Positions 47,615 through 49,784 of a DNA stretch of 64,000 bases are shown here, piece by piece. How positions within the stretch are numbered: the first letter of the stretch is position 1; each line of letters opens with the position of its first letter. The stretch comes from Takakia lepidozioides. Lineage: Eukaryota; Plantae; Bryophyta. Under the pieces are notes generated by a model. It worked only from the letters and a program-made list of their open reading frames with translations. It did no database searches and was not told the origin of the DNA. The stretch spans positions 52,266,001 to 52,330,000 of the forward strand of contig CM060734.1 of assembly GCA_030704615.1 (NCBI GenBank), in the 5' to 3' direction. The translations under genes were made by a program, and so were the position numbers.

Positions 47615-49784
47615 CTAAGCAGAGGCGACAGCAGCTTCAAGGAAAGCTCTTCCAGGGTGGCGGTTTGACAAAGGTCCATGGCACCCAAGCAGCTGTTTCA
47701 GACACAACCCAACAGACCAACTTAAGGTTTGTTGCAGGCCAATGATTAGGATGAGAAGAAAAAGATATGCATTGCCAAAAACTGTAGAATGACAATGCAT
47801 GCAAAATAGGGATCCAAAAGCCCACAGGTAGGTGTATCCCAACACCTTGCAAGCACACATGTAACTGAGACAGATGCAATCAAATACCAGAGAAGTACAT
47901 AGATTCAGATATCTCCATCCACTTGGCCTTTCCAGGCTCTACAGCTCTGAATGACACAGATAGATCATCTACGTACCTTGGCAGTCACACCATCATGCTG
48001 GAGGCGATTCTCTTCCTTCCACTTAACGTAGTCTGTTCGAGCAAATTTTGTGAAACCCCTGAAGCAACGCACAACTACTGTTAAATAAATGGTCTAGTTG
48101 TTTCATATGCAATTCCAAGTCATTCCCAGTGCAAGGTTAGGGGTCAAAAGACCTTTCAAGTGTGCAACTGACCATGTCATTCCATGCTTCACTCTTCCCT
48201 CTCACCACTTATAGCAAGGTCTATCCCTCTAGCAGAGGACTTCTCCACAATGTGAGGCCCTCGTGAACTCCAGAACACCAGGATTCGCTAACATCCCTTC
48301 CCCCCTTACAACAGACCACATGGGGGAAAAGGAAAGGTCTCAAGCTCCGAATGTGGCACATTAATTCCAAATAAAGACGGCTTACATGCAGCAATGAGTT
48401 TTGCAGAATACACATTCCCCTTTCAAACAGTTTCGACATGACTACTAATCATTCCATCGCAGCCCATGATCTGCCATTGTAGAACATAAATTTCGAAGAA
48501 GACCTCACCAACAATGGAACACATGATTACCGTGATGTGGCATAGCAGAAAAGAAGTTTATTATAGGAATTTTGAAGTCATTCAGACAACTCTCAAGAAA
48601 TACAGGCGAGTCAACAAAACTGCAACCCCCATGCGTGAAGAAAAAGACACGGCTTGCTCTAAGCAGCTCCAAAACCAGCGTCACCACTGCCTCCACAAGG
48701 CCAGAGACCGAAACGTACCACTTCCTGCTGATAATGATCTTTTGGCGCCCGGGAAATTTGAACTTGGCGCGTCGCAGGGCCTCTTGGGCATGGATTCCAT
48801 TGTTGTCCTTGCATCGAACAGACAACAACACCTGTCCAATGTCCACGCGGGCACATACACCTTGAGGCTTGCCAAACGCCCCCCTCATACCTGTTTGGAG
48901 CCTATCCGCCCCTGCGCATGAAAGCATCTTGTTGATACGAAGCACATGGAAGGGGTGCACCCGCACCCGCAGGTGGAAAGCGTCCTTGCCAGCAAACTTG
49001 GTCATATACTTGTTGCAGGCAATACGAGCAGCCTCAAGGGCCTCGCTGGAAACATTCTCCTTCTCCCAGGAAACCAAATGGACACAGAAAGGGAACTCAT
49101 CTACGCCCTTCTTCTTCATGCCCACATCATAAATGCGGATCTTCGGGTCAGGCACACCCCGGCAGAACCGGGACTTAGGGTATGGCTTGTTTTTAATTTG
49201 GCGATAACATCTCGCTGGGCCTGTCACGAGAAGCATTCAGAGATCAGCACAAACACCTCAAACCTTCAATACCTTACTCTAACATCAGGGTACCCCTTGA
49301 GACGCAAGAGCAACAACTAAAACAACGACCTCCAGCCAGCAGATCAACAGCGCAGGAGGGCTACACCAGCAAGATTGATAAAGTGGAGGCGGGAAAATGA
49401 ACTATGGCTATGATGCTTGTACCCATGCCAATAACCAATAACGAACGAAGTGAAGAAAGAGATGGCGATAACCGGGGCTGAGAACGACAGAAGATTCCAT
49501 ACCAGCTCGACACACGGCCTAACTTAAAGGCGAGCGAAAGCGCGCTCATGGCCATATAGAGACTCGATACAAGAGTAAACGAGGGAAAAACACACAAACA
49601 GACACGAATCACAACACCAACGAAGCAGGACCGGGCTACTTACGACGACCCATGGTGAGGTAGAGCTGATGGAGACAAACAATGCACAGAGCAGCGCAAA
49701 TGATACACACAGTCGCAAAACAGAACAACAAGCAGGCAAGAGTGTGAAGATTGAGGCAGGACGGGATTACATACGACGACCCAT
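47615..49784 (-). CDS. RPL10: 60S ribosomal protein L10 (uL16/QM)
   Basis: Exons 49784-49775 (or 49653-49644; ATGGGTCGTC), 49220-48719, 48058-47977 and 47692-47615 give [22 protein letters not shown]...SRKWGFTKF...[14 protein letters not shown]...ASA*; all introns GT-AG. Confidence 0.97.

Follow-up and report, generated by a model that had tools for sequence, protein, structure and literature searches.

Alternative transcription start sites in Arabidopsis alter the 5' leader of an mRNA and leave the encoded protein unchanged (PMC6064979). Autoregulation of a ribosomal-protein gene by unproductive splicing coupled to NMD is described for RPL10a/uL1 (PMC4937301). The uL16/RPL10 gene analyzed here lies in a 64,000-nucleotide stretch of the Takakia lepidozioides genome, termed the window, and carries two tandem copies of its start-codon exon, 1a and 1b, in front of a common exon 2. 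These copies are probably alternative first exons that arose from a small duplication and lead to the same uL16 protein. As in the Arabidopsis examples, the choice between two putative start sites would set the leader and the environment of the AUG, and the protein stays the same. Unlike in those examples, each putative start site has a start codon and a splice donor of its own, copied by duplication, and no involvement of a uORF is seen. The locus resembles RPL10a/uL1 in that a ribosomal-protein gene can be spliced in different ways towards its 5' end, and one hypothetical form, containing a cassette exon, would be non-productive. However, uL16 is a different protein, the RNA contigs hold no unproductive junction, both isoforms that are seen are productive, and no conserved intronic element or structure was found. 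No account of duplicated start exons in cytosolic RPL10 turned up in a full-text search of the literature.

Judged by its Ribosomal_L16 domain and its eukaryotic N-terminus, MGRRPARCYR, the gene is that of cytosolic uL16/RPL10. It is read from the minus strand of the window. Exon 2 (48719-49220) is the main coding exon, as established by translation, a Pfam match and RNA joints on both sides. Its first base is 49220, in the context gtgacag/GCCCAGCG, and it gives a full-length profile match to Pfam Ribosomal_L16 (PF00252, E 5.2e-36). The protein encoded by this exon is 95-98% identical to plant uL16/RPL10. Exon 3 (47977-48058) is defined by sequence and by the RNA joints 48057>48718 and 47692>47977. 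Exon 4 (47200-47692, from translation and contigs) completes the reading frame with 25 codons and a stop codon at 47617-47615, after which a long 3' UTR continues below 47200; two RNA contigs cover the low end of the stretch. Exons 3 and 4 together give a normal uL16 C-terminus, and the pieces of the protein are closest to those of Riccia, Sphagnum and Marchantia. Upstream of RPL10 is a WDR26 gene. The region 5' of exon 1a contains a telo-box-like ACCCTAA (50047-50041) and site-II-like TGGGCT motifs. Telo-box and site-II motifs are typical of plant ribosomal-protein promoters.

The sequence ATGGGTCGTC followed by GT occurs at two minus-strand sites in this gene, 49784-49775 (exon 1a) and 49653-49644 (exon 1b), which bears out the original prediction of two identical start-codon exons. 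Exon 1a reads gccATGGGTCGTC/gtatgt, with its ATG at 49784-49782 and its end at 49775, and exon 1b reads accATGGGTCGTC/gtaagt, with its ATG at 49653-49651 and its end at 49644. The donor of exon 1a is GTATGT (49769-49774), where the joint reads CT..AC on the plus strand and thus GT..AG on the minus strand. Exon 1b has the consensus donor GTAAGT (49638-49643), and its joint, 49219>49643, is also GT..AG. The distal first exon, 1a, consists of a leader plus ATGGGTCGTC and is placed at 49775-49842 from the sequence and an RNA contig, with an upper limit of 49842 that is a guess set at the pyrimidine run ctctctttc. The RNA-backed part of the proximal first exon, 1b, likewise leader plus ATGGGTCGTC, occupies 49644-49673, and the exon continues beyond this in the upstream direction. 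Each AUG has a purine at -3 and a G at +4. The computed reading frames of 1a joined to exon 2 and of 1b joined to exon 2 both begin MGRRPARCY, and the predicted in-frame splicing of either copy to the exon at 49220 is seen at both joints in RNA contigs.

Both start exons lie within a direct repeat of 34 nt whose copies, at 49753-49786 and 49622-49655 on the minus strand, are 85% identical and 131 nt apart. The repeat was recovered by a repeat search, a word count and an alignment against shuffled sequences. The 15-mer CCATGGGTCGTCGTA occurs exactly twice in the 64 kb, versus 0.09 occurrences expected when up to two mismatches are allowed, and the local alignment of the two copies scores 43 versus 15.8 +/- 2.3 for shuffles. 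The two start-exon copies are not chance look-alikes. Significant similarity is confined to the 34-nt core, which comprises CC, the 10 nt of coding sequence, the donor and roughly 22 nt of the intron that follows. No significant likeness is seen between the leaders 5' of the two ATGs, since 749 of 1000 shuffles score equally well, and duplication can therefore be claimed for the 34-nt core alone. A tandem duplication of the whole unit, start site included, was rejected because the upstream similarity does not rise above that of shuffles. The leader before the 1a ATG (window 49798-49775, cgcttcagttgccATGGGTCG) resembles the leader of a single-start Physcomitrium patens gene (L008, 2480-2510, cgcttcagacgccATGGGTCG); this likeness could be due to chance or to a conserved leader element.

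Only two public runs, X1 and X2, contain the gene, in both cases as assembled contigs. Introns 2 and 3 are missing from these contigs, which shows that both runs represent RNA. The X2 contigs of exon 2 and of exon 3/4 match the window without a single differing letter, and X2 thus has the window's genotype. X1 shows about six differences in approximately 2.2 kb (~0.3%) and is the same species with another genotype. In an X2 contig of depth 590, positions 49775-49804 of exon 1a are spliced to exon 2 (joint 49219>49774/5). In an X1 contig of depth 872, positions 49644-49673 of exon 1b are spliced to the same exon (joint 49219>49643/4). Each copy therefore has its own donor and is joined in RNA to a common exon 2, as alternative first exons are.

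The X1 contig carries 30 letters on the 1b side, up to 49673. It continues collinearly with the genome for 8 nt past the acceptor that had been proposed for exon 1b, such that 1b is entered without the use of an acceptor. The recorded depth of the corresponding X1 bin, 257.5, equals (871.6x30 + 7.85x81)/104 and is consistent with exactly 30 letters. An unspliced X1 contig spans 49200-49672 at a depth of 7.9, and X1 depth is zero across 49696-49799, where exon 1a lies. Both first-exon contigs end exactly k-1 = 30 nt beyond the joint, as at a branch in a de Bruijn graph, and they stop there because the unspliced contig of X1 makes the graph branch at the donor. De Bruijn assemblers clip short segments that continue only upstream as dead-end tips. 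If the upstream segments were lost in this manner, both first exons would be about 100 nt long or less. The dominant first exon thus differs between samples, with 1a in X2 and 1b in X1. This switch could be genetic rather than physiological, since the runs differ in both genotype and sample.

The two copies are separated by an intron-like interval of 109 nt (49666-49774, minus strand) that is pyrimidine-rich, with 68% C+T. Its single AG is formed by its last two bases, with none elsewhere in 49774-49667. Because there is no other AG, the X1 RNA was not joined by splicing to any more upstream part of the interval. Furthermore, a dominant transcript that begins at 1a and retains the interval is excluded by the zero depth of X1 over 49696-49799. 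No ATG is present in 49769-49654, downstream of the 1a donor, and a leader beginning there would therefore be free of uAUGs. The start site and the leader of exon 1b probably lie within this interval. The count of one AG, versus 21 in the 423-nt intron 1b, was considered as proof of an intron and rejected for this purpose, since by a rough estimate only about 2.5 would be expected from the A-poor composition of the interval.

These features fit a simple sequence of events. A small duplication with a recognizable core of 34 nt gave two copies of a very short first exon, in each of which a leader precedes the first 10 coding bases, ATGGGTCGTC, and a GT donor follows them. Transcripts that start above 1a would use the 1a donor, and 1b would be removed within a 554-nt intron. 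Transcripts that start within the 109-nt interval, at a start site of their own, would begin with 1b and be spliced from its consensus donor. The two mRNAs encode the same protein and differ in the 5' leader alone. Such an arrangement may serve a regulatory purpose, for example, leader-dependent translation or promoter control.

A parallel arrangement is found in P. patens, where two of the three RPL10 genes have two start exons. These are located at 2322 and 2501 in L012 (CM009316.2), 179 nt apart, and at 2501 and 2687 in L007 (CM009322.2), 186 nt apart. In both genes, each start exon consists of ATGGGNCGNN followed by GT and resides within what is otherwise intron 1. As in the window, two tandem start-codon exons share a common exon 2 and give the same protein. 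Unlike in the window, there is no recent-looking 34-nt repeat that extends into the intron, and the spacing and flanks are unrelated to those of Takakia. In the public annotation of L012, each start exon has an mRNA and a CDS record of its own, and both records specify the same 223-aa protein. In addition, 1b is joined to exon 2 in L014, an mRNA contig of metatranscriptome origin that comes from a close relative (98% CDS identity). Its 1b leader of 133 nt follows the genome without a break up to a point 37 nt below the 1a donor; in L014, 1b is a first exon and not a cassette.

When L007 and L012 are aligned, 1a and 1b stand out as conserved islands, whereas the rest of the intron has diverged. 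The three differences between the genes in these start exons are all at third codon positions and are synonymous, which suggests coding constraint on both P. patens exons. Telo-box motifs (TAGGGTTT) occur above exon 1a (L007 2350, L012 2195) and also in intron 1 below exon 1b (L007 2757-2785, L012 2579-2620), where one of them is conserved between the two genes. An N-terminally extended P. patens isoform made from an in-frame 1b was considered and rejected, since the 238-aa protein in question (P0144) has a C-terminal extension and comes from another moss.

RPL10 loci from other land plants were collected by exact protein look-up, and the 2 kb upstream of exon 2 was scanned for ATGGGNCGNN. The original prediction had pointed to RPL10 first introns across land plants as a place to look for a second start exon, and this search was productive in P. 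patens L012 and L007 and negative elsewhere. Nine other bryophyte and lycophyte RPL10 loci have a single start exon or no intron. One start exon is present in Sphagnum fallax (L001) and a second Sphagnum locus (L016-18), in two Ceratodon purpureus loci (L010/11 and L015), in Marchantia polymorpha (L003-6), Riccia fluitans (L002) and Diphasiastrum complanatum (L022), and in P. patens L008. Calypogeia fissa (GCA_965154635.1) has three intronless full-length RPL10 ORFs (L019, L020 and L021, each at 2501-3172). These encode the same 223-aa protein and look like processed (retro)copies that have been annotated as genes.

The chance that a second motif of nine fixed bases occurs in a 450-nt intron is about 0.002. 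At this rate per intron, a double start in three of 11 genes is far beyond chance. Ancient conservation across land plants was rejected as the simplest account of this distribution, given the single-start loci in Sphagnum (two), Ceratodon (two), Marchantia, Riccia and Diphasiastrum. Independent origin in two lineages is simpler, because the Sphagnum and Ceratodon loci do not have the arrangement and the flanks of the known cases are unrelated. Thus, the duplications in Takakia and in P. patens probably arose independently. The Ceratodon gene L015 (M758_8G089900, P0009) is annotated with a 283-aa protein that has an N-terminal extension, from an upstream ATG through the leader, plus a C-terminal extension. 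This protein probably reflects an artefact of annotation rather than a genuine isoform.

Three other accounts of the Takakia locus deserve consideration. One supposes a single start site above 1a and a choice between two donors, with use of the 1b donor keeping the interval in the mRNA, such that AUG1 opens a five-codon uORF. Translation of this form confirms the uORF, MGRRM*, ahead of AUG2, and the GTAAGT of 1b is indeed a stronger donor than the GTATGT of 1a. However, X1 has the 1b form at a depth of 872 and no contig over 49696-49799, where a segment of 200 nt would have assembled, and the 1b mRNA contig L014 also ends short of 1a. This account is very improbable. It is unlikely, though less so, that each genotype has one working first exon, namely 1a in the genotype of the window and 1b in that of X1, and that the other copy is the silent relic of a neutral duplication. 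The two runs do differ in genotype and show one form each, nothing above 49673 is seen in X1, and the single-start genes of Sphagnum, Ceratodon, Marchantia, Riccia and Diphasiastrum imply that the duplication is not required for RPL10 function. The ~0.3% divergence of X1, however, makes a structural difference at exactly this place unlikely a priori. Both copies in the window are intact with respect to ATG, context and donor, the donor of 1b being the better of the two, and P. patens keeps both exons, each annotated or used, under apparent coding constraint.

The third account is that of the original prediction, in which 1b is a 22-nt internal cassette exon whose inclusion turns AUG1 into the start of a 19-codon overlapping, NMD-prone uORF and so acts as a dose switch. 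The sequence permits such an exon: tttgtctccatcag ends at 49666, with its CAG completed at 49667-49666, which makes an exon at 49665-49644 formally possible behind a GTATGT donor and a pyrimidine-rich interval with its sole AG at the end. In the hypothetical mRNA with 1a, the 22 nt and exon 2, a 19-aa ORF runs from AUG1 and overlaps AUG2, which would lie 22 nt downstream and out of frame. With AUG1 in a strong context, this form would be nearly null for uL16. An unseen second continuation after exon 1a is implied by the X2 contig, which ends 30 nt above the 1a donor, and AS-NMD is known in other ribosomal-protein genes such as RPL10a (PMC4937301). On the other side, the sole mRNA with 1b reads through the proposed acceptor to 49673, and the joint 49775>49665 that inclusion requires is present in no contig of X1 or X2, in assemblies that drop rare isoforms. 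The scarcity of AG in the interval may, by the estimate given above, largely reflect its pyrimidine-rich, A-poor composition. The 'catcag' of the acceptor has look-alikes in the leader of 1a ('cttcag') and in that of a paralogous Takakia gene ('ctccag') and may be a carried-over piece of leader. Nor is there a frame property that is kept in P. patens, where splicing at the closest AG upstream of 1b would create a 45-nt exon in L012, which keeps the frame, and one of 49 nt in L007, and no conserved frame-shifting cassette was found in relatives, the nine other loci included. No stable RNA structure that might be an autoregulatory site is predicted at 1a or 1b; the predicted folding of each is poorer than that of shuffled sequences (z +2.3 and +1.1), and so nothing points to a binding site that mimics rRNA. 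The cassette is therefore possible on paper and improbable in practice, and the splicing-controlled translation/NMD switch built upon it is unsupported, with 1b joined to exon 2 as a first exon. The contrary picture, that of separate promoters whose exons never meet in one transcript, agrees in part with the contigs, which show 1a and 1b separately and never together in X1 or X2, within the limits of assemblies from which rare forms are dropped. We are also doubtful of a broader proposal, in which convergent and selectively kept duplication of the start exon in moss RPL10 tunes uL16 output by a switch between two leaders or start sites, and a low-level form with 1a and the 22 nt adds an extra off-state.

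If 1a and 1b are alternative first exons, as seems probable, then a very small duplication, with a recognizable core of 34 nt, can give a housekeeping gene a second functional first exon and start codon. The same solution appears in a very distant moss and is kept there in two paralogues. RPL10 is thus a convenient case in which to ask whether the choice of leader tunes ribosomal-protein dosage in plants. Physcomitrium, in which genes are routinely targeted, offers a way to test this. The locus also carries a warning, namely that, without junction reads, an AG upstream of a duplicated start exon is no ground for calling that exon a poison cassette.

Takakia has a second RPL10 gene, known from RNA contigs alone. 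When aligned to window positions 48698-49218, this paralogue is approximately 12% diverged, with almost all of the differences at third codon positions. Exon 1 of the paralogue ends in CTGCGATGGGTCGCC and is spliced normally in X2. In an X1 contig of depth 155, four extra bases, GTAA, are present at the joint of exons 1 and 2, as would result from use of the second GT of GTAAGT, four bases in, as the donor, and this contig enters intron 2. The GTAA form would be frame-shifted and unproductive. At the other end of the window's gene, near the end of the RPL10 3' UTR as suggested by an X2 contig, a direct repeat of about 120 nt (beginning ttagttgtctgcagaattgtagcaaccatcttcctttgatcct) occurs on the minus strand at 46870-47110 in two copies about 180 nt apart.
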